Assembly (NCBI RefSeq): GCF_963921235.1
Contig: NC_086098.1
Location: 24,180,001 to 24,244,000, forward strand
Source of the DNA: Mobula hypostoma
Taxonomy: Eukaryota
Length of the DNA stretch: 64,000 bases
Reading direction: 5' to 3'
Shown: positions 7,776 to 59,530 of the stretch, one piece after another
Layout: the number at the start of each line of letters is the position of its first letter
Numbering within the stretch: position 1 is the first letter of the stretch
The notes under the pieces: generated by a model
The model's database searches: none
Told to the model about the DNA's origin: nothing
The model's input: only the letters and a program-made list of their open reading frames with translations
Translations under genes and position numbers: made by a program

Positions 7776-7899
7776 AAAACTATGAAAATTAAACATGCTA
7801 TTAAATATTCAATGATTACATATGTTTCTAGTAAAAATAAAATGAAAGAATTAGGAAATTAAATACATTTAAATTTTGAACAAAATAAATTTGTAGATT

Positions 7900-9935: not shown

Positions 9936-10287
9936 CAGTGTACATTTATGAAATTTCTCATGTTCAACAATATATGAATAAGGTGGATTGGAAAATCCCT
10001 TGTGCATTATACTCTAAAGATTCTAGAGCTAGAAGATTATGCTTTTTTGAGAACTCCGTTGAACAGACTGAACTAACTCAAGGTAGTTATACTTGGTAAA
10101 GTGGAAAATATTTCCTAAGACTTAGATCTGCATTTACCTCCTCATAAGAACAATGCTTCCTAGTGCTAATGAACGATTGTTTTTAATTAAGAAACCAAAG
10201 ATCAACTTTAACTGTAAATTTGAGAAGGAAACACAAACATGATGATGAATTTGTTGATGACTACTTTATATTCTAATAATCCAATAA

Positions 10288-10440
<153 letters not shown>

Positions 10441-26000: not shown

Positions 26001-26454
26001 CTCCCTGTTCAGTTTCATCACTCGGGCTGGGGAGAGGAGGGTGGCATGGAGATGGGGAGAAAGGGTTGATAGTGGTGAGGTTGATAGTTGATGTACTTTA
26101 TTATGGAACTTAACATCGTTAATAACCATTCTGATTATGTTCAAGTGCAGCACTCTCGAAATCAAAGTTAAACCGTTTTTTTAAAAAACCACTCGAGACC
26201 CCAATCTCACACTGAAATAGAGTGGAAAGAAATTTAGATAATGAGTTATTAACCAAACCAACCATAGCATATCTGATGTGCTGAAAGTTTTAACCAGCTA
26301 AATGTACTACTACAATTATGGTAAATTATGCAATCTGTATGAGGGAAATGAATGAAGATGAGTGGGACTGAAATAAATGTACATTACTTTGTATTACCAA
26401 TTTGAAAATGTGACAAGAGATAATTAAAATAAAAACTGCCAAACTGGAAAAGAC

Positions 26455-26648
26455 CCTATCGTAACTGCCTCCACCACCGTTGGCGGCAGCCCATTCCACA
26501 CACCCACCACTCTCTGCGTGAAAAAAAATACCCCTGACATCTCCTCAGTACCTACTCCCCAGCACCTTAAACCTGTGTCCTCTTGTGGCAACCATTTCAG
26601 CCCTGGGAAAAAGCCTCTTGACTATCCACACGATCAATGCCTCTCAGC
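26455..26648 (-). mobile_element. CR1 3' fragment
   Basis: Reverse complement of the CR1 segment encoding TRGHRFKV...RVVGVWNGLP. Confidence 0.8.
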
Positions 26649-26735
26649 AAAATTGTAATGCAACATCCAATAAGAACATCAGATTTAAAATACTACTAAT
26701 TTAACATAGCACAGTAGATATTTCAATGTGTTAAT

Positions 26736-29700
26736 CAGTCGTTCCCAAAGTGGGTGACATCAAGCCCTGGTGGCAGTGGGAGTCTCTAAACAGGTGATAA
26801 AGATAAGGGGTGCTCAGTGGCAAGTGGAGCAGCTGAGGGATTACAGGCTTATTTTAAGAAATTTATTACATCTTATAAGCATTGGATCATCAGTGCCCCA
26901 TAAATGATTACAATTGCAGTGTAATCACTGCTAATCCACTGTTCTCTTAGACTTTGTTCGAACTGCATTATAGTTACACTTCTGTATTTGGCATATCATG
27001 ATAAATCTGGACTGAAGAAATTTGTGTTACTTCCAGACCCAGCCCATGCATTATTGCTGTTCACTACTGTAGTACAGTGTTAGTACGATTCCCATACTCT
27101 AATCATGCAATGACAGAGTTCCTGTGAATTAAGGTACGGTGTTGGATGGGGTGAAGTTCGGAATCTGCCCTTTTGAATAGTCTTGACAGCATTTCTCTAG
27201 CCTATGGCCCAACTGAGATATTGCTGCCCCACTTTATGTACTTTCAGGCAGAGAGTCTGTTTTTGCCTGAGATATGATGACATCATAACTTTCCCCTTTT
27301 TGATCGCACCACTTGAGGTTGGATTTAAACCAAAGCTGATTGACCATGGTTGTTAATCCATAGTGAAAATGGCAGAAGCGGACCAAACAAAAAAGTGTAG
27401 AGTACCTGAAATAATGGATTTATACCAGTACTAAGCAACCAATTACAGCTAACATGTCTGTTGTGTGATGATGTTTTTTTCAAGTGAAGATTTTTTTTTC
27501 AAATGAAGCAATGAAACCGTCCAGGTTCCTTTAACATTTGAAGAGAATACTTACTGTCATTACACATCTGGTGTTTAGGGCAGCAATGAAAGTTCTCAAT
27601 CTCTGCCGGTGTTCAAGGCTTTCTTCATCACGTCAGAAGCTTCCTCTCGGTTTTCACTACGGTCAGTCACACAGGTCCAGAGTGGAGACAGAAATGCTGT
27701 CACACTCAGATGTAGAAGGATTCTTCATTGCTATTTCCATAACAATTTTGCTTTACTGGTCAAAGTTGTTAGCCCTGAGCTAAACCCCCAAACCTGGAGA
27801 ACCGGTGGACCATTCTTAGTCTGGCCTCTACCTTTTGACCTGTTTTGGCATGTTTGACCCTACCAAGAGCCAAAGCATAAAGCTTTGATTCCACACAACA
27901 TAGCTCTCTGGGTCATTGAGGCACACCAGTCTCCAAACGCAACAACAAGGCTGTGGTCTTCTTGGAGGATTTGAAGAGAATACACTCTCATAAATCAAAC
28001 AAGAACCTGGTTTACCTTCAGTCATTTTGTAAAAACTTTCTGAAATGGAAAACACTTCAAAACATGTTTGCACGCACTTCACACCAAAACAGTGATGGTT
28101 TGCGTGCCTCATACATTTCATTGCTGTATCTGGAAAGCCCATACAATTGGAGAAGAACTGATTCTGCCAGCAGTAAGGGAGGTTCTGAGTATGGTTTAGC
28201 ATAAGTCACCAGATCAAATAATTGAAGTGATTCGGCTCAGTGACAACTCTGTTCAAAGGCAAATAGATAAAATGTCTGAGAATGTAAAATACACATGGAG
28301 TATCATATTTAGGACACCAGAATTTGCTCTTGCAGGTGGATGAGACAACTTTGCCAGGCAATGAATCTTTGCTTCCTGGTTATATTCTCATCATACAAGG
28401 TGAAAGCATGGTCCAAGTTATTATTTTCAAGGGCACTTGAAACAGAAGTATTTTGGTTTGTTGAACAATTTTTCAAAGAAGGACATTCTGCTCACCATCA
28501 TCATTACTTATGCAACATATAGGGCATTATCAATGAAAGGATGCCACCATGGGGTTATTACTTTCTTGAAAAAAGCTGTACCTAATGTTTACTGTTCACT
28601 GTGTAATTCACAGCATCTTGTCGCAAAAAGCGTAAGTGATCAGCTGTACAGATAATAAATGCTATTATCTTAGAGGTAACTAAAATCAAGTTCCATTCTC
28701 TCAATTGTCGACTATTTTGAGAGCTTTGTATTGCGAATGATGAACAGTTTGAACACTTCCTGTTGCATACAGAAGTCAGATGTTTCTCAAAAGAAAACTG
28801 CTTGAAAGATGTCAATGTACTTTTTGAAACTGATAAAATTATTTGAAGACTCAAATGCTTCATTCAGCAAACAACTTAAGAATATTAAGCATGACATTGC
28901 TTATCTGTTGCGATTATTTGCAAAGTTTACTGAAATCAATCTTCAATTGCAAGGAAACTATGTGAATCTTATCAAAGTCAAATCAGTCATCTTCACATTT
29001 CTGTCCAAGTTAACCCTATTTAAGTGCAACATCAGTCTTTGTGACCTTTTCCAATTTCTGAGCCTCTCTGAGTTGGAAGAGAAAGAAAGAATACAAGATG
29101 ATCTTCAGGTATACTCTGCACACCTGGGTGAGCTGCATAAAGACATGACAGAGATTTCAGCATCTTCCCACTATCCAAATTCCAGATTGGTTAATAAATC
29201 CATTCCTAACACTGGTAATGAGGAATTAGCAGGAAGGATGGAGGAAGACTTGATCTCATTATGAAATGACTTGGCTAAAGCCAAGGTTCAAAAATCATTT
29301 CAAGACTTTTGGTTGCAGAAAGAAATCTCTGAACACTATATTGCACCTTGGAAAAAGGTCAAGATGTTCTCTATTACCTTTCCGACATATTTAGTGGAGC
29401 ACAGTTTCATTGCAGTTGTCGACAACTTCTTTCAAAACAACAAAGCAGACTGCAAATTACTGAACACGGGGATCTGAGACTCCTGAGTGACGTTTAGCCT
29501 GTATGTCATTGCATCAAGCCCACCCATCTCAGTGAAATGTGATAAAGCAATAAAGTAATGAATAATTGGACTGCTAATGTATGCTCTAAAATTGTTGATG
29601 GAAATTGTTTTACTGTAGTTAAATAAAGAAATAATTTTATTTGTTGCTTTGTATAGATTTTGCAGTTATTTGTCACCGCTTTGAATTTGCAGTTCCTATT

Positions 29701-29830
29701 TTCTTTCACTATGCATCATAAATCAAAATTCTTTACAGTTTTAATGTAATTGCTGGAAAGAGAGAGAGGAGGCACTGGGGATGTAGTCTGGGAGCCAAAG
29801 AAGTTAAATGAAAGTGAATTTGGGAAATCA
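26736..29830 (+). mobile_element. Decayed hAT DNA transposon, Charlie/Buster (ZBED5/ZBED8-like) group
   Basis: Left end cagtcgttcccaaa and degenerate right end tttgggaaatcag; transposase remnants from about 27369 (FSNEAMKPSR, HCVIH, INLQLQG, FWLQKE, FPTYLVEHSF) with many stops and frameshifts. Confidence 0.85.
27551..27968 (-). mobile_element. Short non-autonomous retroelement (RTE-related) with 15-bp TSD
   Basis: atttgaagagaatac duplicated at 27536-27550 and 27969-27983; minus strand has the RTE 5'UTR-like ccaggtttgggggtttagctcagggctaacaac; family assignment is from recall. Confidence 0.7.
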
Positions 29831-29974
29831 GATATTGTGATTAGAATTCTGCATTTACCAAGTTCCGGGTCTGCTTAGTATCACATATAACACAAAATAT
29901 CTCCTAATAATTATATCCTTAAAATAACATGCTGAGGTGTGAATATTTAAACCATTGCATTTTATTTTGTTCAG

Positions 29975-30092
29975 GATGAACAGTTTGCTTGTTTTCGGGA
30001 CATCCGACCTGGTGCACCCCATCATTATCTTGTAGTGCCAAGGAAACATGTTGGAAATTGCAAATCTCTGAAAAAGGAACACATACCAATAG
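29975..30092 (+). CDS. HINT3: HINT3 exon 2
   Basis: ttcag acceptor; DEQFACFRDIRPGAPHHYLVVPRKHVGNCKSLKKEHIPI plus G; gtgaga donor; 118 nt. Confidence 0.96.
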
Positions 30093-30349
30093 GTGAGATT
30101 GTACTGACACAATTTTTTTAAAGAAATCAGAGGGACTTTTTTTTTGTTTTAAATCATGTTCCAACCCTTTACAGTATCCTTTATCTGTTGAAAAGTTCTT
30201 GTAAAAACTTTGCAAATGCATAATTAAAGTTTTCCAAAAAAAACTCTTTAACTTTTGACAGACCAATGACCCGGTTTAGATATAGAAACCTGGGTTAGGC
30301 AGCGTCTCAGGAGAAAGACATTTTTTTTAGTATTTCAGGTCAGTGATTT

Positions 30350-31120
30350 AGCAGATGGAATTCAATGCAGGGAAGTGTATGGTCATGCACTTTGGTAAAA
30401 GGAATAAAGGTGTAGACTATTTTCTAAATGGGGAGCAAGTTCAGAAAGAGAGGTGCCAAGGGATTTGGAAGTCCTAGTGCAGAACCCCTAAAGGTTAACT
30501 TGCAAGTTGAGTCAATGGTAAAGAAGACAAATGTAATGTTAGCATTAATTGCCAAAGGACTAAAACATAAAAGAAAGTTGTAATGGTAAGAGGCTTTTTA
30601 AGTCATTGGTCAGACTGCATTTGGAGTATATGACCACTTTTAGGCCCCGTATTTAAGAAAGGATGTGCTGGCAATGGAGAGGGTCCAGAGAAGGTTTACG
30701 AGAATGACCCTGGAAATGAAAGGGTTAACATATGAAGCTCTGTATTCACTGGAGCTTAGAAAAACGAGGGGAGATATAACTGAAACCAACCAGTATTGAA
30801 AGTCTAGATAGAGTAGACATGGAGAGGATATTTCCAATAGTGGGAGAGTCTGGGACCAGAGGGCACAGCCTCAGAATAGGACATATCTTTAGAACAAAGA
30901 TGAGGGGAATTTCTTTAGCCTGAGGGTAGTGAATGTAGAATTTATTGCCATAGACAGCTGTGAGTATATTTAAAGCAGAGGTTGATATGTACCTAATTAG
31001 TAAGGGTGTTGAAGGTTACAGGAGATTGAAGGCAGGGAAAATAAATCAGCTATGATCGAATGATGGAGCAGACTGGATGGGCTGAACTGCCTAATTTTAC
31101 TCCTTTGTCTTATGGTCTTA
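30350..31120 (+). mobile_element. Decayed CR1 3' fragment
   Basis: QMEFNAGKCMVMHFG and ERVQRRFTRM-type sequence plus CR1 3'UTR. Confidence 0.85.
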
Positions 31121-31639
31121 TTTTTTGGCAGAACTGAATAAAGTTGGGGATGAAACAACATGCTTTTCACTGGCTCTGGATGGAACACTGGCATTTAACT
31201 GTTGAGATGACAGCATCCCAGATGTTTAGCCGTTGAAATGACAAAATATCTGTTATTTTCATGCGTGTTTTACAAATACAGACAGCCTGAAGTGATTGAC
31301 AGCAGGTTACATTATATCTGAGGATACAATCCCTTAAACTGCAGACCCCTCTTGGATTCTGTGGCGGGTTAGTCGGTGCAGCATTTGAGACCTCCAAGTT
31401 TCATTTAGGATTGTAGCGATGTATTGTAAGGCAAGCTCCTTTTTGTTTTTAAATTATTTATGATTAAGTTAGCATTTTTCATTTTTAATGTTTTCATATA
31501 ATTTCATTGTAGTGTGAAGATTATGATAGAACAAGAGGGGGAGGGGTAAGCAGTATTACAATGTCTTTTGGGTATCTTTTTTTAACTCAGAGAGTGGCAA
31601 GTCCATGATGTTAGTAATTATGGGGTCTTGCTGATAAGT

Positions 31640-32630
31640 GAAGGAGGAACTACAGAGAGATCTTGATCAGTTAGGGAGATGGGCAGAGGAATGGCAAATG
31701 GATTTCAACCTAGATAAATATGAGGTGATACAATTAAAGCAGGGAAGGATTCATACAAGGATTGGCAGGGCACTGGGACCTGGAGTGCAAGGGCACAGTT
31801 CACTGAAAGTGGTAACGTAAGTAGACAGGGTAGTAAAGGCGGTGTTTAGTGTGATAGCCTCCTTTGGTCAGGGCATCGAGGTTTGGAGTAAGGACATTAT
31901 GTTGCATTTACACAAATCATTGGTGAGGCCACACTTGGAATACAGTGTACAGTTTAGGTCACCCTGTTATTAAGAAAAACATGGTCAAGCTGGAGGTTTG
32001 CGAAAATGCTGTCTAGACTAGAGGACCAGAGTTATAGGAAGAGGGTGGCTATGCTGGATCTTTATTCCTTGGAGTACAGGAGAATAAGGTATAACCACAT
32101 CAAGGTTTATCATGAAAAGTATTGATTGGGTGAACAGTCATCATATTTTCCCCAGGGTTGGAGAGCCCAAAACTAGAGCGAACAGATAGAAAATAAGTGT
32201 GGAGAGGTTTAAAAGAGATTGAGCGGTAACTTCTTTATACAGAGGGTAGTGCGTAACTCGAATGAGCTGCCAAAGGAAGTGGCTGAGGCAGGGACAACTG
32301 CAAAATTTAAGAGATGTTTGGGTAGATACATGGAGGGGAGGGACTTGGAGAATTATGCAAGGCAGCTAGGACTAGCAGAGAGGATGCTGTGGTCAGCATG
32401 GACCATCTGGGCCAAAGGGTCTGTGCTGTATTACTCTGTACCCGGAATGCATCACCTAAGAGAGTGGTGCAAGCAGAGTTACTAAGAGCATTTAGGAAGT
32501 ATTCTGATGAACAGTTGAAAGACCTAGGCAGAGAAAGCTGTGGGACAAGTGCTAGAAAATGGGATTGATATGGATTGGTGCCCATTGGTCAAGAGTGGAT
32601 GTGCTAGGCTGAATGCTCTTTTCCATATTA
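31640..32630 (+). mobile_element. Decayed CR1 3' fragments
   Basis: LQRDLDQLGRWAEEWQMDFN and NFFIQRVVRNSNELP. Confidence 0.85.
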
Positions 32631-33094
32631 TATAATTATCGCTATTAATAGTTTTTGAATGCCTCATTGTGAGAAACACTTATGAACTAATAGAAAATCT
32701 TTTTGGCTCTAACAGTCAATAAAGTTGGAGCAAGAGGTTTCCTGACTCTTGAAATTCTTGGAGTTTTAGGAAAGGGGCTTTCTTATGCGTCATTGGCAGT
32801 TCTGCAGATTTAGATAGGCTGGAGGCTGCATTGATTAGTATGGTCATCAGGACTAGGTTAGTATTGTCATAGGGCATCCAGGGATGATGATTCTATGAGA
32901 TGAAACTTGGCCAGCTGGATTCAGCTCAACGTGTTTTATAAAGGAGAGGAAGAGTGGAAGGAAGAAGGGTCGAGTACAAGAGGCAGTGATTGTGTGAAAG
33001 GTATGAATGAATAAATTACAAAAGTGTTAATGGAGTAAGATGAAAGAAGGTGCTAAAGAGATGATCTGAAGTTTTTCCTGTATATATCCACTGG

Positions 33095-35150
33095 ACCATA
33101 AGACATAGGAGCAGAATTGTAGGCATTTTAGCTCATCAAGTCCACTCTGCCATAACTGATCCCAGGTTCCATTTGCCTCCATACTCCTGCCCTCTCATCA
33201 TATCCCTTGATGTCTCAACCAATCAGGAAACTATCAACTTTTGCTTTGAATACACCCACGGACTTGGCCTCCACTGCAGTCTGTGGCAAAGCATTCCACA
33301 AATTCACCACTCTTTGACTTAAAAAAATCCTCCTTCTACTCTAAAGAAGCCCCTCAATTTTGAGGCTGTGCCCTCCAGTTCTGAACATCCTCCACATCCA
33401 CCTTATCTAGTCCTTTTAACATTCGGTAGGTTTCAATGAGATCCCCATGCATTCTTCTAAATTCCAGTGAGTACAGACCCAAAGCTGCCAAACACTCCTT
33501 ATATGTTAACTCTTTCATTCCCAAAATCATCCTCATGAACCTCTTCTGGACTCTCTCCAATGACAATACATCCTTTCTGAGATATGAGGCCCTAAACTGT
33601 TGACAATACTCCAAGTGCGGCCTGACTACTGTCTCATAAAGCTTCAGCATTATCTCCTTATTTTTATATTCGATTCCCCTTGAAATAAATGCCAACATTG
33701 CATTTTAGATTAGATTAGATTATGAGGACTCTCAGTTCTCATTTATTGTCAATTACAAATGCATGCATTAAGAAATGATACAATGTTCCTCCAGTATGAT
33801 ATCACAGAAACACAGGACAGACCAAGACTAAAACTGACAAAAACCACATAATTATAACATATAGTTACAACAGTGCAAAGCAATACCGTGACTTGATAAA
33901 GAGCAGACCATGGGCATGGTAAAAAAAAGTCTCAAAGTCCCGATAGCCTCATCATCTCACGCAGACGGTAGAAGGGAGAAACTCTCCCTGCCATGAACCT
34001 CCAGTGCCGCAAACTTGCCGATGCAGCACCTGGAAGTATCTGACCACAGCCGACTCTGAGTCCGTCTGAAAACTTCGAGTCTCCGACACCGAGCACCAAG
34101 CACCATCTCTGCCGAGCGCTTCGACTCTGCCCCGGCCGCTGAGCAACGAGCAAAGCCAAGGACTCGGGGCCTTCCCCTCTGGAGATTCTGGATCACACAG
34201 TAGCCGTGGCAGTGAAACAGGCATTCCAGAAGTTTCACCAGATGTTCCTCCGTGCTCTCACATCTGTCTCCATCAAATCAGGATTGTGCACGACACCCTA
34301 CTTGACAAATAACAGATAACATCACTAGAGTAGCCGCTGCGCGCTGCGTCGTGCCGCCATCTTCTCCTTCATTTGTCTTCTTTACCACAGACTCAACCTG
34401 TGAATTAGCCTGGGAGCCTTGCACTAGGACTCCGAAGTCCTGTTGCACCTTTGATGTTTGTATTTTCTCCCCATTTAGATAATAGTCTGCACTATTGTTC
34501 CCTTTACCAAAATGCATTATCATACATTTTCCAACACTGTATTTCATCTGCCACTTTTCTGTCCATTCTTCCAACTTATCTATGTCCTGCTGCAATCGCA
34601 TTGCTTCCTCAGCACTACCTACTCCTCCACCCATTTTCGTATCATCCGCAAACTTTGTAACAGAGCCATCAATTCCACTACCTAAATCATTGACAAACTA
34701 TGTGGAAAGCAGTGGCCCCAATACTGACCCCTGAGGAACACTACTTGTCACTGGCAGCCAACCAGAAGAGGCCCCCTTTATTCCCATTTGCTGCCTCCTG
34801 CCTGTCAACCTGTCGGATTTGTCAGGCAAGATTTCTCTTTACAGAAACCATGCTGACTTTGACTTATTTTATCATTAGTCTCGAGGTACCCTTAATAATG
34901 GATTCCAACACTTTCCCAACCACTGAGGTTAGGCCAACCGGCCTATAATTTACTCTGTTTTGCTTTTTCCCTTCTTAAAGAGTGGAGTGATATTTGCAAT
35001 TTTCCAGTCCTCCAGGATCAGGCCAGAATCATGTGATTCTTGAAAGGTCATGACCAATGCATCTATTATCTCTTCAGCAACCTCTTTCAGGACTCTGAGA
35101 TGTAGTCTATCTGGTTCAGGTGACTTATCCACCTTAAGACCTTTCAGTTT
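33095..35150 (-). mobile_element. Decayed CR1 (RT to 3'UTR), interrupted at about 33706-34369
   Basis: DKSPEPDRLHLRVLKEVAEEI, LQQDIDKLEEWTEKWQM, LAFISRGIEYK on the minus strand. Confidence 0.9.
33706..34369 (-). mobile_element. Non-autonomous non-LTR element with GC-rich 5' end and (tctaa)n tail
   Basis: Minus strand begins ggagaagatggcggcacgacgcagcg and ends in (tctaa)3; short cattt duplication at both flanks; splits a CR1. Confidence 0.7.
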
Positions 35151-35279
35151 GACTAGTATTGCAAACTGCCTAGACTTGCTGAGTATTCTTGCAGTTCCTG
35201 TTTGTATTTCTGACTTCCAATATTTACAGGATTGATTTTAACCATTCATTGATTGATTACCAATGTTTTTGCTTACCAC

Positions 35280-37035
35280 AAGTTTCTTTAGATACATAAA
35301 AGTGTAAAAGAGAAGCAAGAGTGGATAGCGGACTACTGGAATACAATGCTGAAGAGGTAGTAATGGGGTGCAAGGAAATGGCAGATGAACTGAACAAGCA
35401 TTTTGCATCAGTCTTCACTGTGGAAGACACTAGCAGCATGGTGGAAGTTCCAGGTGTCAGGGATCATGAAGTATGTGAAGTTACCACTACTAGAGAGAAA
35501 ACTCTTGAGAAACTGAAAGGTCTGAAGGTAGATGGTGTACACCGCAGGGTTCTGAAAGAGGTGGCTGGAGTGATTACGGATCTTTCAAGTATCACTAGAT
35601 TCTGGAATGGTTCCACAAGACTGGAAAATTGTAAATGTCATTGCACTCTTCAAGAAGGGAGAGAGGCAAAAGAAAGGAGAGGAAATCATAGGTCAATTAG
35701 TTTGACCTCAGTGGTTGGGAAGATGTTGGAGTCAATTGTTAAGGATGTGGTTTCTGAGTACCCGGAGGCATATGATAAAATAGGCCGCAGTCAGCATGGT
35801 TTTCTCAAGGGAAAATCTTGCCTGGCAAATCTGTTGGAATTCTTTGAAGAAATAACAAGCAGGAGCGACAAAGGAAAATCAGTTGATGTTGCATACTTGG
35901 ATTTTCAGAAGGCTTTTGACAAGGTGCCACATATGAGGCTGCTTAACAAGATAAGAGCCCCTGGTATTACAGGAAAGATTCTAGCATGGATAAAGCAGTG
36001 GCTGAATGGCAGGAAAAAAGAGTGGGAATAAAGGAAGTGCTTTCTGGTTAGTGGCCGATGACTAGTGGTGTTCCACAGGGGTCTGTGTTGGAATGATTCT
36101 TTTTACATTATATGTCAATGATTTGGACAATGGAATTGATGGCTTTGCTGCAAAGTTTACAGATGATATGAAAATAGGTGGGGGGCAGGTAATTTTGAGG
36201 AAGTAGAGAAGCTACAGAAGGACTTACAAAGATTAGGAGAACGGGCAGAGAAGGGGCAGATGGAATATAGTGTCGTGATTTGTCTGGTCATGCACTTTGG
36301 TAGAAGAAATGAAAGCGTTGACTTGTCTAAATGGAGAGAAAATACAAAAAAACTGAGGCGCAAGGGGAGTTGGGAGACCTTGTGCAGGATTCCCTAAAAG
36401 TTAATTTGCAGGTTGATACTGTTGTGGGGAAAGCAAATGTGATGTTAGCATTCATTTCAAGAGGACTAGAATATAAAGCACTGATGACGCCTCACTTGGA
36501 GCATTGTGAGTAGTTTTGGGCCCCTTATCTTAGGAAAGCATGTGCTGAAACTGGAGAAGTTCAAAGAAGGTTCATGAAAATGATTCCAGGATTGAAAGGC
36601 TTGCCATACAAAGAGCATTTGATCGCTCTGGGTCTTTATTCACAAGAATTCAGAAGAATGAGGGGTGACCTTATTGAAATCTATCAAATGGTGAAAGGCC
36701 TTGATAGAGTGGGTGTGGAGAGGATGTTTCCTAAGGTGGGAGAGTTAAGACCAGAGGACATAGCCTCAGAATAGAGGGGTGTCCTTTTAGAATGGAGATG
36801 AGGAGGAATTTTTTTTAGAGGGAGAGTGGTGAATCTGGCAGCAGTGGACGCCAAGTCTTAACGTATATTTAAGGCAGAGGTTGATAGATTCTTGATTGGT
36901 CAGGGCATGAAGGGATAAGGAGAAAGCAGGAGTTTGGGGTTAAGAGGGAAAATGGATCAGCCATGATGAAATGGCGGAGAAGACTCGATGGCCCAAATGG
37001 CCTAATTCTGCTTGTATATCTTACAGTCTTATGGT
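35280..37035 (+). mobile_element. Decayed CR1 ORF2 3' portion
   Basis: MADELNKHFASVFT, SQHGFLKGKSCLANLLEFF, LDFQKAFDKVPH, and 3'UTR. Confidence 0.92.
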
Positions 37036-37478
37036 TTTTCTGTTTACCACTAGGATTACTCAATACCAGCATTGGTAACTATGTTGCATGTTTACCAACC
37101 ACAACAAAACTATAAATGGAAATATTTGACAGATCAAGCAGCATATCTTTGCAACTTAACCAACTCATTTATCACTTTCTCAGTCCTAGTGAAGAGTCCA
37201 CAACCTGAAATGTTAACTGTTATTGTTTGCACTGATGTTGTCTGATCTGCTGAGCTTTTTCTGCACACCACATGTATGCCACTTTTACTAGTTAGATATA
37301 GTAGAAAGCCCATGTATCACCATTACAATGCAGTGATAGCTGGCAGGTAAAATGAGAGAAGTCGGTGATTGTAAAACTACAAATTTAGATGGCTTTAAAT
37401 TACCTGTGTCCATTTTATAAGTTTATTTTGATTTGTTGGAGAATTTTTTATGTTGTAAAATTCTGCTTTGATAAACAG

Positions 37479-37548
37479 TTGAAGCGCTGGTGACTATTGG
37501 GAAAAATGTACTCCTTCAAAATGGCATAGACGATCTGTCGGATGTGAG
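37479..37548 (+). CDS. HINT3: HINT3 exon 3
   Basis: aacag acceptor; (V)EALVTIGKNVLLQNGIDDLSDV plus AG; gtatgt donor; 70 nt; phases fit both neighbours. Confidence 0.93.
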
Positions 37549-38028
37549 GTATGTACACTATTGTAGAAATTGACTGCTTGTATGCCAATAATTTTATTCC
37601 AAAGAAATTATGGTTAGGATGTATGTTAGTTTTGATAAGCAATGAACTTTATAGCAGTTGTCAAGAAAGGCATGAATAGCATTTAGACTAATTAAAATGA
37701 CAAATTACTATGCAACATTAAATGAATCATGATTTTATGAAATTTATTGGTGGTTCATCTTTTAAAATGGTTCATTATTTTGTATTGTTGCAAAATAAAT
37801 TAGAATGCTTGAAGTTAAATTTAATCTAACATTGCATTGTTGAGGGAAGGTGACATACAATGGCTGTGTAGGTTACTTTGTGAATATGCATTTGTGGCTG
37901 GTGTTTTTCCAGTTTGTGGTAATGTAACAGATTCCCTCTGTCAACATCTAGTCAGAGCTGCCCTCAATGTCGAAACATGGAGAGTTAGAAAATTTAAGAT
38001 AGCCTGATGCTACATTACTTTTGTGCAT

Positions 38029-38151
38029 GCAGGGTCTCGGCCTGAAACGTCGACTGTACCTCTTCCTAGAGATGCTGCCTGGCCTGCTGCGTTCACCAGC
38101 AACTTTGCTGTGTGTTGCTTGAATTTCCAGCATCTGCAGAATTCCTGTTGT
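38029..38151 (+). mobile_element. 5'-truncated Penelope-like terminal repeat with 14-bp TSD
   Basis: ttacttttgtgcat at 38015-38028 and 38152-38165; starts inside the hammerhead motif (agggtctcggcctgaaacgtcgact), lacking CUGANGA. Confidence 0.8.
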
Positions 38152-38387
38152 TTACTTTTGTGCATCTTCAATGTTGCTGTAAATATTTAGGCACATTTTC
38201 TCCAACTTGGATTGAATTATTTTTATCCACTGCTGTACTTTGAAAACATTAAATTAAAAATAAACATTAGTTAAATTTAATATTTAGGTTTCATCTGACA
38301 TAATTAATTTTTTATTGAAGCTTTATTGCTGAGATTTTTGTGAAACTTATGTTGAGTATAGTTACTTAATTCTGGGTTTTTTTGCAG

Positions 38388-38514
38388 GCTTGGTTTTCAC
38401 TGGCCACCATTTTGCTCAGTAGCTCATCTACACTTGCATGTACTAGCTCCAGCTAGTCAGATGGGATTTATGTCAAGAATGATGTACAGAGCAAATTCTT
38501 ACTGGTTTATCACA
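38388..38514 (+). CDS. HINT3: HINT3 exon 4 with the HIT motif
   Basis: tttgcag acceptor; (R)[42 protein letters not shown]; gtgagt donor. Confidence 0.97.
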
Positions 38515-38587
38515 GTGAGTATTTTGTTTTCATTTGATGAATAATAATGTTGTAAGTGAAAATGCAAATCATTTCTCTCTGGGTTGT

Positions 38588-38680
38588 TTACTAACATAGT
38601 TAGTAACATAACTGCTAGTCTGGTTATAACATGGTAGCATAACTGCTCGTCTGGTTACTAACATGGTTAGTAACATAGGT
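38588..38680. repeat. Short imperfect tandem repeat
   Basis: Recurring taacatagttagtaacata and cataactgct(a/c)gtctggtta units. Confidence 0.6.
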
Positions 38681-39194
38681 AATCCTTGGTTGTTATAAGA
38701 AAGATCGACACACAAAGATTCATTTTAACACTCCTGGGATTGGAAGATAAATTGGACAGGCTCTGTTCCCTCTTGCTATTGAACTCATGCCGAATGTATA
38801 CTTTGAGTCTGCTATAGTTGTTCAGTTCTAAAGTTAGTTTTAATTAATTGACTACATTGATCCAAAGTTTTGTGTTACAGTACATGAAAGGTATATGTCA
38901 TGGGTTTAAATTATTTGAAGATTTTGTTTTACGTTGAAGATTGCTTGGGATTGTCCCTGTTTAGCAGGCCATTCAATTCAATAATTCGTAAGCATCTGAA
39001 AATAATCACAGCACCTTGATTATCAGAGCCTATCCTACCAGATCTTTTTTGAACAAGCTGCCCAATTTACTCCTAAACACCCAGTGTTTATCCCAAGATT
39101 TTGCACTTCTCTTCGGGTTCCAAATGTCCAGTATTTGGATTGCTGTATTAGAATATTTTAACTAAATCATTCCATGTAGTGTGGATACTTAAGC

Positions 39195-41100
39195 ACTTCA
39201 AGATACATGTTTATTTATCATGTAAAGATCGAACCATACTACAGTGAAATGTGCCATTTGCATTAACATGGGTATGCTGGGGGCAGTAAGTGTCGCCACA
39301 CATTTGGGTGCCAACATAGCATGCCCAGCAGAATGACAAAACAGAACACAACAAACAACAAAGAAAAACAAGCCCTGTTCTTCCCTCCCATGCACGCGCA
39401 CACACACAGCCCTTAACCCCAACACCCCAAGACAGGCTGTCTTCTTTGACCTCCACCCTCGATCAGACTCACACACACATACATTGGGCCTTCAATAACC
39501 CCAGAGCACTCATGGACCCGGGGTTCTGGCCGATGGGCCTCTATTTCTGCACTACTGATTTGGCCCTCCTCATCAACCATAGGACTCGAACTCTGGCCTC
39601 CCTGATGACAGGACCCTGAACATTAGGCCTCGAACTCTGGTTTCACCGATTCACAATCCTAGTGGATCATCGGACCTCATTGCTCCTGCTTGCACAGAAC
39701 TCCAACTCAGGAACCCCAACTCCTGAACCCACTGGCAACTTGCCACCACCTTTCATCCACGCTAGTCTGCCAGTCTGACATATGCCTGAACATCCCAAAT
39801 GTCCCGCATTGCATGACCGTCCTTCAAAGATTCAGAAGTACTTTTATTACCAATGTATACATTATACAACCTTGAGTTTCATCTCCGAACAGGCAGCCAC
39901 AAAACAAAGAAACCCAAAACAACCCATATATTAAAAAGAGACTGTTGAACACCCAATGTGCTGTGAAAAAACAAACTTGCAATCAAATAGCGTTCTGAAC
40001 TAAAGTCCACAGGAGTCCCATAGTTCGGCGCAGAGCCGAGCAAACCTCACGGAGCAGCAACCTAAAACTTGCCTCGGGCCCCGTCACCCTGACCTTTTCA
40101 ATCTGGTTCAGTGCCGAAATCCTTGTCCAAACATCAGGTTCAATTATCTTGATATGCCGTGGGGCCAGGACCCCGCCGCTTTGAGTTGGCCTGTAACCGA
40201 CACTTCTGATCTGCCATGGCGCTTAAATCTCTGTACAAACATCAGGTTCAGTCACCTCGATACGCTCTGGGGCCAGGACCCCACCACTTCGATTCAGTCC
40301 TATGCTTAAATCACCACACAAACATCGAGTTCAGTCGAATCTGAATGCTCTGGTGCTTAGACCCTATCACCTCGATTCGGCTTGTACCCGACCTTTCTGA
40401 TTCATCACGGCAATAAAGTCTCCATCCAAACATCAAGTTCAGTTGAGTGGGTATGCTCTGGTGCCAGAACTTTACTGTCTCGATTTGGCCTTTGGAATGT
40501 CGTTTAAAATGATTGAACTTCGGGTCCTCCTCGCTCTGCCCAATGAAGCAGTGGAGGCTACCTCGGTAAATATATTCAAGACAAGGTTGGATAGATTTTT
40601 GCGTAGTAGGGGAAATTAAGGGTTATGGGGAAAAGACAGGTAGGTGGAAATGAGTCTATGTTCAGGTTAACCGTGACCTTACTGAATGGCAGAGCAGGCT
40701 TGACGGGCCAGATGGCCGACTCCTGCTCCTATTTTCTTATGTTCTTGGTGATAGGCCTGCTGCTTCAGCTGGCCTCTGTTCTGCCACATAGAATTGCCTT
40801 CAAGCTCAAAGGGAAGTTGTAGACTATTACTTGCAATGATCATTTGCCAGAATAAGTGTGATGAACAAAATATTTAGTTTTTCCTGTCGCCAGCCAGAAG
40901 TCGCTGAAGTTTATGAGCGCCATCTTAAACTAGAATCTTCGTACACAGAATGAAGACTCATGACTCCAATCAGGCCTCTCAATTCCCCCATATCCGTCCC
41001 TAAATCTTCACCTGACCCCTAACTCCCTAACCCCCAAAACACTAAAAAACTGCTAAAACTGAGCCATGACTTGAAGAGAATGTAGCTCAGCACCATCTTG
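39195..41100 (-). mobile_element. Nested non-autonomous non-LTR elements with aagatgg(c/t)g 5' ends, plus an internal CR1 3' end (+) at about 40540-40745
   Basis: Reverse-strand starts at about 40930 (aagatggcgc) and 41100 (caagatggtgc); LINE-like tails near 39200 and 39830; family unresolved. Confidence 0.55.
40090..40490. repeat. About 108-bp imperfect tandem repeat, roughly 4 units
   Basis: caaacatc(ag/ga/aa)gttca anchors at 40128, 40236, 40319 and 40427. Confidence 0.8.
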
Positions 41101-41865
41101 AACATTGTTCGTTAGTGTACAGTGGATCCAGGCAAGTTAACAGGAAAATAATTTACCCAGGTCTATCCAGATAAAGAACTGCTTTTCTTTAGTGTACAAA
41201 CTGTTGATGAGAGCTAATGAGTTTTCTTCACTCAGAAGGCAACATTGTTATTAACCATTTAGCATTTAGGTTGATGTACCTGTATTAAAATTATTAAACT
41301 CTACTGGATTCTTTTTTATGGAAGTATTTGATTTAATCTGGTGTGATTCAATGTTAACTAAATGCCCATCAAGTGGAACCTTTGTTCATATCTAGGAATG
41401 CCAGACTTTGCACATCTCTGTCCCTGCAAAGAGAATTTATGGAAATCATCTTAAGTCCCAATATTTTAGAGAAACTAAAGTTTTAGAATCAGAATTATTT
41501 TTCAGCAGAGGTGCAAAAAATACTATAAATTACAAAATGAATAAATAGTGCAATTAAGTATTTATAAAATAATTTATATTGTCCTTTGAAAGGAAGTTTT
41601 GGACTGGATCAAAATAATCTTCCCATGTAATATGTCCAAGAGTTTTATTTTAAGAAATGTTTCTCTACTTCCCTCTTAAAATGATTGGCCCCTTACATCT
41701 ATTTATTTGAACTGTCATATCCATTTGTACAAAGTACCGTCAGTCCGTGCACCCTCCTAGTAAGGTTTAGCTGTTGGGCCACAGTGAACCATTTATCTGG
41801 CTTTAGGGCTTGTTTTGTAAATTTGGTTTGTATTTCCTAGTGTTCAGAATTTCAGAAATGATCAG

Positions 41866-42012
41866 ATTGAGGTTTTGATTAAACCTGGATAAATAGATGT
41901 GAGGAATGGATCAGCCAAGGATAAATTGTCCAACGATCTATTGTCAGTTTAACTTATCCTTGGCTGATCATTATCTCAGCTCTATTTAAGCAAATTCAAT
42001 CAAGACTTCAAT
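41866..42012. repeat. Long imperfect inverted repeat (59-bp arms, 29-nt loop)
   Basis: 41866-41924 versus reverse complement of 41954-42012 is 46/59 identical ungapped, with a perfect 16-bp inner stem GATCAGCCAAGGATAA. Confidence 0.9.
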
Positions 42013-42158
42013 TAGATAAATAGTGCTAAGGTATTGATTAACCACAGTCTAAATGAAAGAACCTGGCTGAATAGCTAGTTCTGTTTCTATTACTGCTCAC
42101 TTCTAGGGATTGCTAACAAATATTAAAGTCTCACCACAATGTTTTTCTCCTCTCTAAG

Positions 42159-42215
42159 GATGAACAGTTGCTTGAAAAGCTTAAGACTCTCCCAGGTGAT
42201 TCCAGTGGAAGCTAA
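42159..42215 (+). CDS. HINT3: HINT3 exon 5 (terminal)
   Basis: Pyrimidine tract and aag acceptor; DEQLLEKLKTLPGDSSGS then TAA; resembles human ADHLIEKLRT. Confidence 0.88.
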   Translation, partial: DEQLLEKLKTLPGDSSGS

Positions 42216-43269
42216 TCAATTGAAGACCAGGGTGTAGATCCAGAAGTTCTTTCTATTTCAAGACTATAATTGTTCGTTAACCTGATCCAACTTTTGGTTT
42301 AATCAAATAGCATTAGGAGGTGATAATTCTATCTGAAAAATGTCATTTAATATGTTCCTGAATACTTGATGTTTTAATACACTATGAATTATATGAATGG
42401 CTTCAAATCCATTTAACTCAATCCAAAGTTGAATGCATAGAAGTTCATAAATAGTTAACTAAATCTGACAGCATGCAATTGGTTGTAACCCAAAATGGAA
42501 AGACTGAAGAACTTTAATTACATATACAAATGTTCTTACACAACTTATCTTACATTTTGTTTAACATTTAATTGCACTGGCATCAATACAACTTTTGTTG
42601 TAAATGTTTCAATGTGCATCAAGTATTTAATTTGAATCTGTATATATAGAATGGAAGTCTCTCCAGACTTTAAGTTAATTTTGACAATTGTATTCCTGGT
42701 TGAACAGTTCAACTTATAAAATTGCACAGGCACAGAACAATCTTTCTCTGCTTGTAATTTATAAACAATGCAAGTTAAAATTGAATGTCCAATGTGTCAT
42801 TGAGTTAAGGATTGTTTATGACTTATTGAATTAATTTATATATGAAAATATACAAATATAATGAATCAAATTATGACAGCTGGTGATGCTTTCCAGCATG
42901 CATAGCCACAAAACATTTGTATTATAAGGAAATGCAATCCATTCTAAATGCACTCTAAAAAAAGGTTAAAATCTGTTTCTCAACTGATTGGAAAAAACAC
43001 TTGGAAAGCTGTTAAGTTGATGGAGAAGGGAAGGGTGAAACTACTTTGACCTCCCCAGTCTGCTAATCACTCTCCTCATCCGTATCCTCCCATCAGCTGC
43101 CAGCTCTTGCCTCAGCTCTTCCCCTAGTCTTTTTATAGGCTACATCTCTAGCTTTCAGTCCAAATGAACCGGAAACAGCAATTGTCCGTTTCTCTCTACA
43201 GATGCTGATTTGCACTGACGTCAATCCTCAGTTTTATTTTGCTCTAGGTTTACTTACTGTTAATTAATA

Positions 43270-56493: not shown

Positions 56494-56961
56494 TCACTCC
56501 AGCAGCGTGATGAGAACCTGATCGTCCCTTCCTTGCCACAGCATTTCCCCGTCAAAGTCAATCAGACCGTGTTTCCTCGCTCGTAAGAGAAGCCCCACCA
56601 CTTTATTGGAAATTGTCACATAGGCGTCAAACAATTTTCCAAACCTCACACAAATGTTCCCATCTGGACCGGATTCTCCGTTCTTTCTAATAATATACAA
56701 CAATTCCTCGATTTCTCTGTCGACCAGGCGCTGTGCATCTTTCCCCCTCCGCTCAGTTTTTGATCCTTTTTTCGGACGCCCGTATTCCTCTCCCGCTTTG
56801 TGCGGTTCCCAAGACGGGACATGGGCGCCACTGAAAGGATTACTCCTCTGGTACTCCCTGTGGTCACCAGCCCACTTCTGCCACCTCTGCCTCAGCGTCG
56901 CTATTCCGTGAGGTTCCGGCGTCCGCAGTTCGTCCTTGCGAACACTTTCACTCTCTCCCAT
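56494..56961 (-). CDS. Actin-binding Rho-activating protein-like (ABRA/STARS family, Costars domain), 155 aa
   Basis: RWQKWAGDH..NPFS, YGRPKKGSKTERR, FGKLFDAYVTISNKVVGLLLRARKHGLIDFDGEMLWQGRDDQVLITLLE*; first ATG at 56961 in strong Kozak context (gatATGG); in-frame stop upstream at 57019-57021; CpG-rich. Confidence 0.88.
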   Translation of the reverse strand: MGESESVRKDELRTPEPHGIATLRQRWQKWAGDHREYQRSNPFSGAHVPSWEPHKAGEEYGRPKKGSKTERRGKDAQRLVDREIEELLYIIRKNGESGPDGNICVRFGKLFDAYVTISNKVVGLLLRARKHGLIDFDGEMLWQGRDDQVLITLLE

Positions 56962-57119
56962 ATCCTTCTCCCGGACATTACAATCCTTCAATCCAGGAGA
57001 AGTTTTCGGAGTTACTCTTCAGTGTAGTCAACAGCTGGATTGAATTTGTTGCACATCATTCTCCTGAGTTGGGCAGATCATTTCCCGGCTAGTCTCAGCG
57101 TTTCTTTCCGAAACCCGAA

Positions 57120-57285
57120 AACCAATTGTTCCGCTGCACAGCTTTGCAAACCACCGGATCAGCAGATGCCGATCAGAACGAAGGCGAGGTGCTCATCATG
57201 ATCGACAAGTTAATCAACCAATAACTCGGCAAGCATCGCACCAATGGGCAAGAAAAACAGGGAACGGCGGCTGGCTATTGGACAA
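57120..57285 (-). promoter_or_regulatory. CCAAT-box cluster, putative promoter of the ABRA-like gene
   Basis: CCAAT at about 57122, 57218 and 57241, and ATTGG at 57277, within a CpG-rich zone. Confidence 0.45.
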
Positions 57286-57649
57286 TGTTTCACGTTACCG
57301 CCTTTAACCCCTTTATTGTTACGACCGCCTCTAGGTCAAATTGAGGATGGTTGGGGTTAATTTCTCCAGTCGAGAATGAGTAATGGTTGGGGGAATAATT
57401 AGAATACAGTGAAAAATAGCGCAAATCTGATGTTTCAATTAAGAGATTTTTTTTCAAGTGTTGTCGGATATTACAGGATAAATGAAAATCAGAACACTTA
57501 CTTGGGAGGAGCCGTTCCAAATCGATCGAGCGCTTGGACACCAAGACTGGCCAGGAATAAACAAGCAATGATAAATTTCATCAAGTGAACATGGTCATAA
57601 AAGTTAAACGTGCTGTGCGAAGCTAAGCTATGAAACTTTATATTTTAAT

Positions 57650-57822
57650 CACAAAATGCTGGAGGAACTCAGCAGGCCGCGGCCGACGTTTCGGGCCGAG
57701 ACTCTTCACTAGTCTCGTTGTCGACTGTTCACTCTTTTCCATAGATAATACCTGGCCTACTGAGTTCCTCCAGCATTTTGTGTGTTGCTTGGATTTCCAG
57801 CATCTGCAGATTTCTTTGTTTC
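57650..57822. mobile_element. Penelope-like remnant with inverted arms and 11-bp TSD
   Basis: cacaaaatgctggaggaactcag versus ctgagttcctccagcattttgtg; tatattttaat at 57639-57649 and 57823-57833. Confidence 0.78.
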
Positions 57823-58664
57823 TATATTTTAATGTTTTCCTGAGAGGAGGGAAATGTTAATGCTGCGACGGGGAAAGAGGAAAATGATAAGATGAAAAGG
57901 AATGGTGTTAACTAAATTAGCTTCACATTTTCTCATATTTGCCTACGACGTTCGGATCTAATCAGTCCATTTTATACATGACGGCTTTCCCAATTATTTT
58001 CTTGTATTATCACTCGAAATTAATGTCACGTTGTCCAAATAATATACACTTATAGTTGATATATAGGTTATCAAGGGAAGCTAAAATGGAAATATAAACG
58101 ACACTGGCAACAATATTTTAATCTTCATTAGATGTGGGAGTGATTCAGGGGATCTGGAAGACTGAAAATATTATATCCCTTTTCGGAAAACGAAAGAACA
58201 AACAGCACAACCTGTGTAACATCGATAGTGGAATTATCACTCAAGGTCATTGGCAAAGGCAGAATTAATTATCACATGCATTAAGAACAGCCAGCATGTA
58301 TTTGTTAAGTGCAGTACATCTCACCCTGCCTAATCTGATTTAGTTCTATATCACAATAGTGGAGGGTTGATGGAAACTTTATAAATAGACTTACAGAGAA
58401 ATATGAAAATGAAGTATTACCGGCCAGACTCATTCAGAAAACAGAAGCGCGCGTTATTAAAACGACAGTGATAACTTGTTCCTGTAAATTCAAGTTTAAT
58501 TGTCATTCAACCATGCATGCATACTTATGAATACAGCCGAACTCTAGCATCTGTTAGCGCTATTGCAGCATTACTCCGGGGCCAAGGTGCAAATGCAGTA
58601 TCACCAGTACGAGGCATATAAAGCACATACAGAAAGCAAACACAGATAAGGTATCAATGAATCA

Positions 58665-58745
58665 TAAACACGAGAAATTCTGCAGGTGTTGGAAATTAAA
58701 AGCAAGACACATGAAATGCTGGAGAACTCAGCAGGTCAGGCAGCA
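58665..58745 (-). mobile_element. Penelope-like terminal fragment
   Basis: aaacacgagaaattctgcaggtgttggaaat...atgctggagaactcagcaggtcaggcagcat. Confidence 0.7.
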
Positions 58746-59139
58746 TTGTTACAGCAGTCTACAGTCGAGCACAATGATACTTGTCTTCTGCTGAGTGAAC
58801 ACTAGAGGGCAGCACCGACTACGCAAATGATATCAAGAAGTTGATTTAGGAGAAAATAAAATTGCTATAACATGTTTCGTGGACGATATAAGAAATTTTG
58901 GATGGAAGGAGGAAACTAATTTCTACTTCATGTCTGAATTTAGTTTTTAAAATGATTTTTTGGTATTAAAACATTAGCTTATTTTAAGTTGCCGAAGACC
59001 ATTTCAAAACAAATATTTCACAGGCAACAAATGTAAGTTTAAGAGCCTAAAGAACTCAAACAATAATTCGAATGGACATAATTTTAAGCAATAAGTATTA
59101 ATCAGTGGGTTGTAATGAAAGAGTTTGAGTGCTGTTTAA

Positions 59140-59530
59140 TAGTCGGTCCCGGAACTGATTTTCGGTGTTGAGGGTGCCTGCAGGTCTGGGATGTTGTTTG
59201 TGACGGATGCGAAGATGGCGCTGTCCAGTGGGTTCTTGGGTCGGAGGTTTTTGCTTCTTTTAGCCCAGGAAAACGTGGAGTTCCGGCTCCCGGTGAGTTC
59301 CCGGTGTCGGGAGCGGGGCTGTAGGTTTCACATCGGTCACGCAGTCTCGAAGCGGTTTAATTGTGGGCAGTGACTGCGGGGAAAGCCCGGAGAGTCGCGC
59401 TTGGGGATAGGAGACTGCCGCCTGTCTACGGAGGAATCTCGGCGGATCGAGACCCTGCCTGTGGACTCAGTTCCCCGAGTAAAATTGTTTGATGCTCCTG
59501 CGCTTGGTGTATTGACTGCAGCGGAAAAGG
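59140..59530. promoter_or_regulatory. CpG island and promoter of TRMT11
   Basis: CpG-dense; ETS-like ccggaa near 59149; YY1-type aagatggcg overlapping the ATG. Confidence 0.65.
59215..59292 (+). CDS. TRMT11: TRMT11 exon 1 (tRNA m2G10 methyltransferase)
   Basis: aagATGG; MALSSGFLGRRFLLLLAQENVEFRLP then gtgagt; resembles human MALSCTLNRYLLLMAQEHLEFRLP; NCOA7-HINT3-TRMT11 synteny; no further exon found in the window. Confidence 0.9.

Follow-up and report, generated by a model that had tools for sequence, protein, structure and literature searches.

The actin-binding Rho-activating protein (ABRA, also STARS or Ms1) is a long protein, and a reading frame that corresponds to only its C-terminal part was found near NCOA7 in the genome of the ray Mobula hypostoma. 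This raises the question of what such a short frame is: a gene under constraint or a remnant, a copy peculiar to this ray or one member of a wider family, and a relative of ABRA by genome duplication or by another route. A window of 64,000 nucleotides (NCBI RefSeq assembly GCF_963921235.1, contig NC_086098.1, positions 24,180,001 to 24,244,000 of the forward strand) was analyzed for this purpose. A first-pass annotation of the window had proposed that a gene pair including ABRA was duplicated in early vertebrates and that the copy survived here in minimal form.

Structure and Conservation of the Short ABRA-Like Gene

The reading frame lies on the minus strand and encodes 155 amino acids from an ATG at position 56961; according to both the ORF listing and the sequence, the frame is intact to the stop codon at 56494. 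Between stop codons it can be extended by at most ten codons, to a TTG at 56991. An in-frame stop codon is located just upstream of this TTG, so without a splice no in-frame extension of the ORF is possible. The window contains no N and has 54 ORFs of at least 90 amino acids; therefore the length of the ORF says little by itself, and homology decides. All features recognized in the window are listed in Table 1.

Table 1. Features of the short ABRA-like gene and of its neighbors in the analyzed window.
Feature	Position	Strand	Basis
NCOA7 3' TLDc-domain exons (6689-6844, 10306-10431)	6689..10431	+	tblastx vs. stickleback TLD gene; Pfam TLD E 1.6e-09, 4.7e-11
HINT3 exons (approximately 25875-25958, 29969-30115, 38380-38529) and last exon/3' end (approximately 42140-42860)	25875..42860	+	tblastx/blastn vs. 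stickleback and skate HINT3 gene calls
Candidate polyadenylation signal AATAAA, 335 nt past the stop codon	56154..56159	-	pattern match only
Short ABRA-like (Costars-family) CDS, single exon, complete	56494..56961	-	155 codons + stop
Costars domain, residues 80-154, winged helix, equivalent of ABRA/Ms1 actin-binding domain 2	56500..56724	-	Pfam PF14705, PDB 2krh
N-terminal conserved region, residues 20-66, equivalent of the C-terminal part of ABRA actin-binding domain 1	56764..56904	-	alignment, invariant residues
Interval separating the start codon of the short ABRA-like gene (-) from that of TRMT11 (+), 2.25 kb; presumed divergent promoter region	56962..59214	.	
TRMT11 coding exon 1	59215..59292	+	78% nt identity with the 5' end of the Amblyraja TRMT11 gene call; tblastx match to stickleback exon 1

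Two conserved parts can be distinguished in the protein. Residues 80-154 match the Pfam Costars family (PF14705) with an E-value of 5.1e-32 and a score of 110.3 bits, the curated cut-off being 24 bits, and the match covers positions 2-76 of the 76 in the profile. The NMR structure of the C-terminal domain of ABRA (PDB 2krh) is matched by residues 76-155 with an E-value of 1.9e-26 over 80 residues, and the match to ABRACL (PDB 2l2o) is far weaker (E 5.4e-07). Thus, the first-pass description of an intact 155-residue ORF with a Costars domain was borne out by the ORF listing and by both of these matches. The second part, residues 20-66, includes a predicted helix (20-39) with a W-Q-x-W motif, an NPFS motif (41-44), and an AT-hook-like YGRP motif (60-63); in alignments it matches a region present in long ABRAs and in invertebrate homologs. 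Among 30 short orthologs spanning the jawed vertebrates, 44 columns are invariant, including W27, W30, Q38, N41, P42, F43, S44, Y60, G61, P63, and G66 of the N-terminal part.

The AlphaFold2 model of the ray protein has a mean pLDDT of 76.8, with values of about 76-93 across the Costars domain. Residues 1-15 are disordered in the model and are followed by the helix 20-39, a linker of low confidence (40-67), and a confident helical and winged-helix body (68-153). The Costars part contains helices at 68-94, 107-113, and 118-130 and strands at 103-106 and 150-153, an order compatible with the winged helix-turn-helix of 2KRH.

Comparison with the ortholog from the skate Amblyraja radiata gave a dN/dS ratio of 0.21 overall at a dS of 0.56, with 0.13 for the Costars domain and 0.32 for the N-terminal half, which indicates purifying selection. 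On the evidence of its sequence, the short ABRA-like ORF is a functional gene under constraint.

Genomic Context

The genes in the window follow the order NCOA7 (+), HINT3 (+), short ABRA-like gene (-), and TRMT11 (+), as mapped by comparison with the stickleback and skate loci and by Pfam scans of exon translations. This puts the short gene in a tail-to-tail arrangement with HINT3 and in a head-to-head arrangement with TRMT11. The HINT3 exon translations match the Pfam families HIT/DcpS_C (E 4.7e-12 and 3.8e-08), and the translation of TRMT11 exon 1 starts with MALSSGFLGRRFLLLLAQENVEFRLP. The TLDc exons of NCOA7 are read on the plus strand, and the ORF is thus on the strand opposite to NCOA7, as had been noted. 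The first-pass placement of the gene at the NCOA7 locus holds insofar as NCOA7 is one gene away; the immediate neighbors are HINT3 and TRMT11.

The interval between the start codons of the short gene and TRMT11 is presumed, from the head-to-head arrangement, to act as a promoter region shared by both genes. A motif scan found CCAAT/ATTGG boxes 165-320 bp upstream of the ATG of the short gene. Scanning for CArG, MEF2, E-box, and CCAAT motifs gave no motif conserved among the sequences upstream of the gene in ray, skate, alligator, and stickleback, and beyond the coding exons no sequence conservation with the skate was detectable at the locus. The rest of the DNA in the window is largely LINE debris, including one intact ORF of 999 amino acids for an endonuclease/reverse transcriptase.

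Distribution of Short Orthologs

Within the length range, 167 relatives were returned by a protein search, the top match being that from Hemitrygon akajei (92% identity over the full length, 155 aa), followed by Amblyraja radiata (79-80%, 156 aa). The Mobula protein itself was absent from the searched collection, in which the best match was the one at 92%. Short orthologs were found in rays, sharks, and chimaera, in ray-finned fishes (gar and many teleosts), in coelacanth and lungfish, and in frogs, a caecilian, alligator, lizards, snakes, birds (partial models), and marsupials (Tasmanian devil and bilby). Nearly all of these proteins have 148-160 residues and are annotated as "actin-binding Rho-activating protein" or "actin-binding Rho-activating protein-like"; the stickleback protein carries the UniRef name Si:dkey-29b11.3. 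Annotated short orthologs are also present in zebrafish and Xenopus. Thus the copy has not survived only "here," as the first-pass annotation had it, and is kept and annotated across nearly all non-placental jawed vertebrates.

In placental mammals, no annotated short ortholog was found in searches of protein collections, as distinct from genome alignments. A second search, with a marsupial protein as the query, returned one further mammal (bilby) and no possible placental ortholog in the range from 69% to 100% identity. The claim that the gene is absent from the corresponding human block agrees with these searches, which return no annotated placental ortholog.

The position of the gene is also kept. 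The order TRMT11, short gene, HINT3 is common to skate, stickleback, and alligator, and in stickleback HINT3 is followed by NCOA7. The gene calls are single-exon in these three species, and the head-to-head distance to TRMT11 is approximately 1.1 kb in skate, 1.0 kb in stickleback, and 4.3 kb in alligator. Logan contigs from stickleback proved collinear with the genome, which says nothing about splicing or expression.

Phylogeny of Short and Long ABRA Proteins

In an exhaustive HMMER search, residues from about 18 to 154 of the query matched the C-terminal 140 or so residues (about 140-160) of proteins of 330-415 amino acids. In lungfish, lamprey, teleosts, white shark, gecko, and chimaera, it is these proteins that are annotated as ABRA. 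The correspondence to only the C-terminal part of ABRA, already recognized in the first-pass annotation, is seen directly with the white shark protein, in which residues 220-359 align with residues 18-153 of the query. Annotations of long ABRA exist for sawfish, Atlantic stingray, skates, and an electric ray as well, and white shark and chimaera each carry both the short and the long gene. In the relatives of Mobula, therefore, the short gene is not the sole ABRA, since cartilaginous fishes have a separate long one.

A maximum-likelihood tree of the shared region was built with 55-56 sequences, 158-160 columns, and the LG+C20 model; the invertebrate branches are long. The long ABRAs form one clade with four lamprey sequences and two frog sequences of approximately 170-200 amino acids (support 95/91, and 99/100 after removal of a contaminant). 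This clade excludes all short forms, including the protein from the window. The window protein groups with Hemitrygon (100/98), then with Amblyraja (100/99-100), and then with sharks and chimaera (96/88-93). The first tree has the short forms as a sister clade (94/91), roughly in the order of the species tree; in the second tree, after removal of the contaminant, they form an unresolved basal grade.

The contaminant was a 170-residue short form annotated as Lampetra planeri and located next to TRMT11, which first looked like a sign that the short/long pair predates lampreys. It is sister to the stickleback sequence inside the teleosts (100/98), and the 55-kb contig on which it lies follows the stickleback locus collinearly, with 70-87% nucleotide identity and near-identical exon spacing. 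It was regarded as a contaminant from a teleost and excluded, and no other lamprey sequence qualified as a genuine short form.

AU tests were applied to alternative groupings, several of which were named after a tree had been seen. A duplication within cartilaginous fishes was rejected (p 0.019), monophyly of the short clade was not rejected (p 0.43), and a position of the lampreys outside all jawed-vertebrate sequences was not quite rejected (p 0.066). The first of these results and the exclusion of the short forms from the long-ABRA clade both support the earlier claim that the gene is a distinct paralog and not a recent copy. The long and the short groups each contain cartilaginous and bony fishes, and the two paralogs thus coexist on both sides of that divergence. 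The short and long genes separated before cartilaginous and bony fishes diverged, and probably before the lampreys branched off.

Ancestral Architecture

Invertebrate homologs of the ray protein are short. Examples are the proteins of the tunicate Clavelina (156 aa), the annelid Owenia (194 aa, single-exon), and mites and ticks (170-190 aa). ABRA-type forms of approximately 150 residues have also been described from invertebrates including insects and nematodes (Zaleska et al., PMC4682817). Since the homologs of tunicate, annelid, and mites or ticks are short too, the short form is most likely ancestral and the long N-terminus was added. Positions of about 10-45 of the short-protein profile, which cover the W-Q-x-W helix, also match the N-terminus and the middle of long ABRAs, and part of the long N-terminus looks like internal repetition. 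Therefore, the short vertebrate gene most likely retains the ancestral architecture. The first-pass wording, a minimal STARS "lacking the long N-terminus," implied a loss, and this part of the description does not stand.

Columns that separate the short from the long forms were also searched for. The sole fully diagnostic column, in the motif I-S-x-K, has N in all 24 short forms and in five of the eight invertebrates, and D in all 23 members of the long clade, including the lampreys; with only one such column, an argument from ancestral residues is thin. At the single invertebrate locus that was inspected, that of Owenia, the neighbors are unrelated and no conserved neighborhood was found.

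Origin of the Short Gene

In sea lamprey and in a gecko, the tail-to-tail neighbor of long ABRA is a gene of the OXR1/NCOA7 type, encoding LysM and TLD domains, at distances of 7.6 kb and 4 kb, respectively. Human ABRA and OXR1 have the same tail-to-tail arrangement. At the short locus, in the window and in stickleback, NCOA7 is one gene (HINT3) away. Within 10 kb of long ABRA, no TLD gene was found in white shark, sawfish, Betta, or for smelt abrab, which is uninformative rather than negative. In total, one pair of paralogous neighbors, the TLDc genes, was found within the 10-kb flanks of the short and long loci.

We consider it quite likely that the ray ORF is the functional ortholog of a short single-exon Costars gene, which is an ancient paralog of ABRA/STARS/Ms1, arose by segmental duplication together with a LysM-TLDc gene, and has kept the ancestral architecture and the actin-binding core. 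An ancestral segment with a LysM-TLDc gene and ABRA would have been copied, leaving an OXR1-type gene beside ABRA and NCOA7 near the short gene; such a pairing would fit the early vertebrate genome duplications. The short copy would have kept the ancestral architecture, and the long lineage would have added a disordered N-terminus with extra copies of the W-Q-x-W motif. The first-pass proposal that a TLDc gene and ABRA were duplicated as a pair thus gains from the antiquity of the paralog and from the TLDc gene near both loci. Its attribution to an early vertebrate genome duplication goes further than 10-kb flanks and a 158-column tree can prove, and we regard a whole-genome-duplication origin of the short/long pair as fairly likely.

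Two other explanations of the locus can be considered. One is a decaying or non-functional copy, either a pseudogene or a chance ORF in repeat-rich intergenic DNA; in its favor, LINE fragments crowd the interval, and ORFs of at least 90 amino acids are common in the window. Such a nature of the gene is effectively refuted by a frame that is intact over the full length of the orthologs, by the dN/dS value (0.21 at dS 0.56), by the 44 columns invariant in 30 orthologs, by the Pfam match (E 5e-32), and by a position kept in four distant lineages. The other explanation is an ancient retrocopy: an ABRA mRNA, either 5'-truncated or of ancestral length, would have been inserted into the HINT3-TRMT11 interval before the jawed-vertebrate radiation and would have acquired a promoter on the TRMT11 side, NCOA7 being nearby by coincidence. 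The CDS is intronless in ray, skate, stickleback, and alligator, but this is not diagnostic, since the annelid homolog and the long ABRAs of shark and sawfish are also intronless. The start of TRMT11 is approximately 1-4 kb away, so that the gene is placed where it could borrow a promoter, and LINE reverse-transcriptase fragments, although much younger, abound in its surroundings. The presence of HINT3 between the gene and NCOA7, unlike the direct adjacency of ABRA and OXR1, also speaks for insertion, whereas a LysM/TLDc-family neighbor at both loci speaks for duplication. Moreover, the short architecture fits the invertebrate homologs and not a truncated long ABRA, and with N at I-S-N-K in all 24 short forms, against D in the long clade, the source of a retrocopy would have to predate the stem of the long clade. 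A retrocopy origin is thus unlikely, and segmental duplication is the preferred reading.

Predicted Function

Actin binding by STARS is reported to require residues 234-279 and 346-375, its two actin-binding domains being ABD1 (193-296) and ABD2 (294-375) (PMC3520124). The ray protein aligns with these actin-binding parts of STARS and with little else. It would consist of an ABD1-like helix and linker (residues of about 20-66, with an AT-hook-like GRP) and an ABD2-like Costars domain (80-154). Since this is just the part of STARS reportedly required for actin binding, binding and stabilization of F-actin by the ray protein are probable. Such stabilization would lower the level of free G-actin, release the MRTF cofactors, and thereby activate SRF. 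For the complete sequence of events, from F-actin binding and stabilization to MRTF/SRF activation by the ray protein, the chances may be put at roughly even.

For Ms1, it was reported that an AT-hook beginning at residue 279 enables sequence-specific DNA binding by ABD2, that the fold resembles the winged helices of transcription factors, and that a smaller homolog, COSTARS (PDB 2L2O), bound neither DNA nor actin (PMC4682817). DNA binding through the AT-hook and the winged helix, as for Ms1, would also be possible for the ray protein. It is accordingly conceivable, though somewhat unlikely, that the main role of the protein lies outside the actin-MRTF-SRF pathway, either as a nuclear DNA-binding factor or as a protein that modulates actin dynamics in an ABRACL-like way and has no SRF output. 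The DNA binding of Ms1 and its transcription factor-like fold would agree with the former, as would the YGRP core, invariant in the short orthologs; the inactivity of COSTARS toward DNA and actin, and the replacement in the ray protein of the ARHRR loop of Ms1, also favor a role of this kind. On the other hand, both regions reported as necessary for actin binding in STARS are present in the ray protein and are its best-conserved parts, and the protein is much nearer to ABRA than to ABRACL (E 2e-26 vs. 5e-07). A role in actin binding and MRTF/SRF activation is therefore preferred here.

Significance of the Short Gene

Vertebrate STARS/Ms1 is described as a protein of just under 400 residues (PMC4682817). 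In the open literature searched, no mention of a vertebrate paralog of approximately 155 residues was found, and the gene dealt with in the zebrafish STARS study had been cloned through its homology to rat STARS. The short ABRA-like gene is not new but has been overlooked and left unstudied, and its apparent loss in placental mammals would explain the neglect. The short gene is a natural "minimal" STARS for asking what the long N-terminus adds. It also matters when knock-down phenotypes of fish or frog ABRA are carried over to mammals, since in fish and frog the paralog may compensate.

A broader picture can be suggested tentatively, as possible rather than probable. Most vertebrates would keep an ohnolog of ancestral architecture, a "mini-STARS," beside the muscle-specific long ABRA. 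With its transcription diverging from that of TRMT11, this gene would serve as a separate regulator of actin-MRTF-SRF signaling, possibly outside muscle, and would have escaped study through its loss in placentals. Jawed vertebrates may then have three ABRA lineages, the short one, "a," and "b" (the latter being tetrapod ABRA), a pattern that two rounds of genome duplication would produce. At the level of the family, a mini-STARS kept by most vertebrates, lost in placentals, and fixed beside TRMT11 may merit a short study.

Comparison With Known Systems

ABRA/STARS/Ms1 is a long protein of striated muscle (approximately 350-400 aa), and its C-terminal 140 or so residues are homologous to the ray protein, sharing the W-Q-x-W helix, NPFS, YGRP, and the Costars domain. 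The Costars part of the ray protein is roughly 65% identical to that of rat Ms1. In contrast to the ray protein, long ABRA has a disordered N-terminus of approximately 200 residues and extra copies of the motif. The ray protein is placed outside the long-ABRA clade (99/100), and its gene is located between HINT3 and TRMT11, whereas long ABRA is tail-to-tail with an OXR1-type gene in lamprey and gecko. Further differences are found within the shared region: the ray protein does not have the F-D-Y segment that follows NPFS in long ABRA, and it has N instead of D in I-S-x-K. In ABD2, rat Ms1 has a basic ARHRR loop, and the ray protein has KNGESGP at this place; since the basic patch is not conserved, the binding properties of the two proteins may differ.

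ABRACL/Costars (81 aa; PDB 2L2O, the chain of which is labeled C6orf115) shares the Costars winged helix with the ray protein and consists of this domain alone, without the N-terminal actin-binding region. Thus, the ray gene differs from canonical long ABRA in length, clade, and neighbor, and from ABRACL in architecture. The ABRA-type proteins of invertebrates (approximately 150-200 aa) have the same two-part architecture, a similar length, and 45-55% identity, and the annelid gene is also single-exon; these proteins belong to outgroup lineages. The closest counterparts are the annotated vertebrate "ABRA-like" genes of Hemitrygon akajei, Amblyraja radiata, Callorhinchus milii, and Alligator mississippiensis, which agree with the ray gene in length, single-exon CDS, position, and sequence and show no difference of substance from it. 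The gene in the window is the expected ray member of this short "ABRA-like" orthogroup, already annotated in most jawed vertebrates except placentals.

ABRA Lineages in Jawed Vertebrates

In the tree of the shared C-terminal region, the teleost proteins annotated as abrab (P0127 and P0128) and tetrapod ABRA (P0131, P0396, and P0400) group together with support of 100/95-96. The proteins placed outside this group include teleost abra, the sturgeon sequence, and the long ABRA of sharks, rays, and chimaeras (P0125, P0287, P0288, and P0292), as well as a 336-aa lungfish protein and frog proteins of 170-200 aa. A single group formed by ray-finned abra and abrab was rejected by the topology test (AU p 0.002), and an "a-type" clade was not rejected (AU p 0.31). 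Jawed vertebrates may have three ABRA lineages. Shark and ray long ABRA is possibly not the strict orthologue of human ABRA.

In cartilaginous fishes, long ABRA is intronless, as found for the white shark (P0125; 1086 bp, 361 aa) and the sawfish (see the table). For lamprey, gecko, Betta, and smelt, the gene range of long ABRA exceeds the coding sequence. The white-shark gene is also spanned by a gene call with a Tim17 domain.

Pairing With TRMT11 and Lamprey Sequences

Ray, skate, stickleback, and alligator all retain the head-to-head arrangement of the short ABRA-like gene and TRMT11, with the two genes 1-4 kb apart. No sequence conservation was detectable in the spacer between these genes when ray and skate were compared.

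Both genes were also found on a 55-kb contig (CBDBYP010001544.1, locus L007) of the assembly GCA_965212315.1, labelled Lampetra planeri. This locus is collinear with that of stickleback, with 70-87% nucleotide identity and near-identical exon spacing, and its protein (P0085) was placed within teleosts with support of 100/98. The contig looks like teleost contamination of the lamprey assembly.

At least three ABRA-type genes were found in lampreys in addition to the 395-407-aa form adjoining a LysM-TLD gene. One of these encodes the Petromyzon marinus protein P0135/P0410, which has 1130 aa and is ABRA-like over its final ~140 residues. This protein and P0413-P0415 all fall within the long-ABRA clade.

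LINE ORF2 and a Possible LINE ORF1 Remnant

The intact LINE ORF2 of the window has 88% nucleotide identity over 2.8 kb to a copy in the skate HINT3 region, located at a non-orthologous position. The similarity of these copies suggests a LINE family recently active, or slow-evolving, in both rays and skates. The 228-aa ORF gave weak OSK (E 6e-06) and GDSL-lipase-like (E 1e-03) matches, both under the Pfam cut-offs, and may be a remnant of an esterase-type LINE ORF1.

Features of the window and of related loci and proteins
Feature	Location	Strand	Size	Remarks
228-aa ORF	window 14793-15479	-	228 aa	weak OSK and GDSL-lipase-like matches
LINE ORF2, intact	window 16962-19961	+	999 aa	endonuclease and reverse transcriptase; between NCOA7 and HINT3
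Skate LINE copy	L004:16898-19721
Spacer, short ABRA-like gene to TRMT11	window 56962-59214			equivalents in loci L004 (skate), L001, L006
Sawfish long ABRA	L012:10001-11113		1113 bp, 370 aa	no intron
P0413-P0415	lampreys		236-305 aa	ABRA-type proteins
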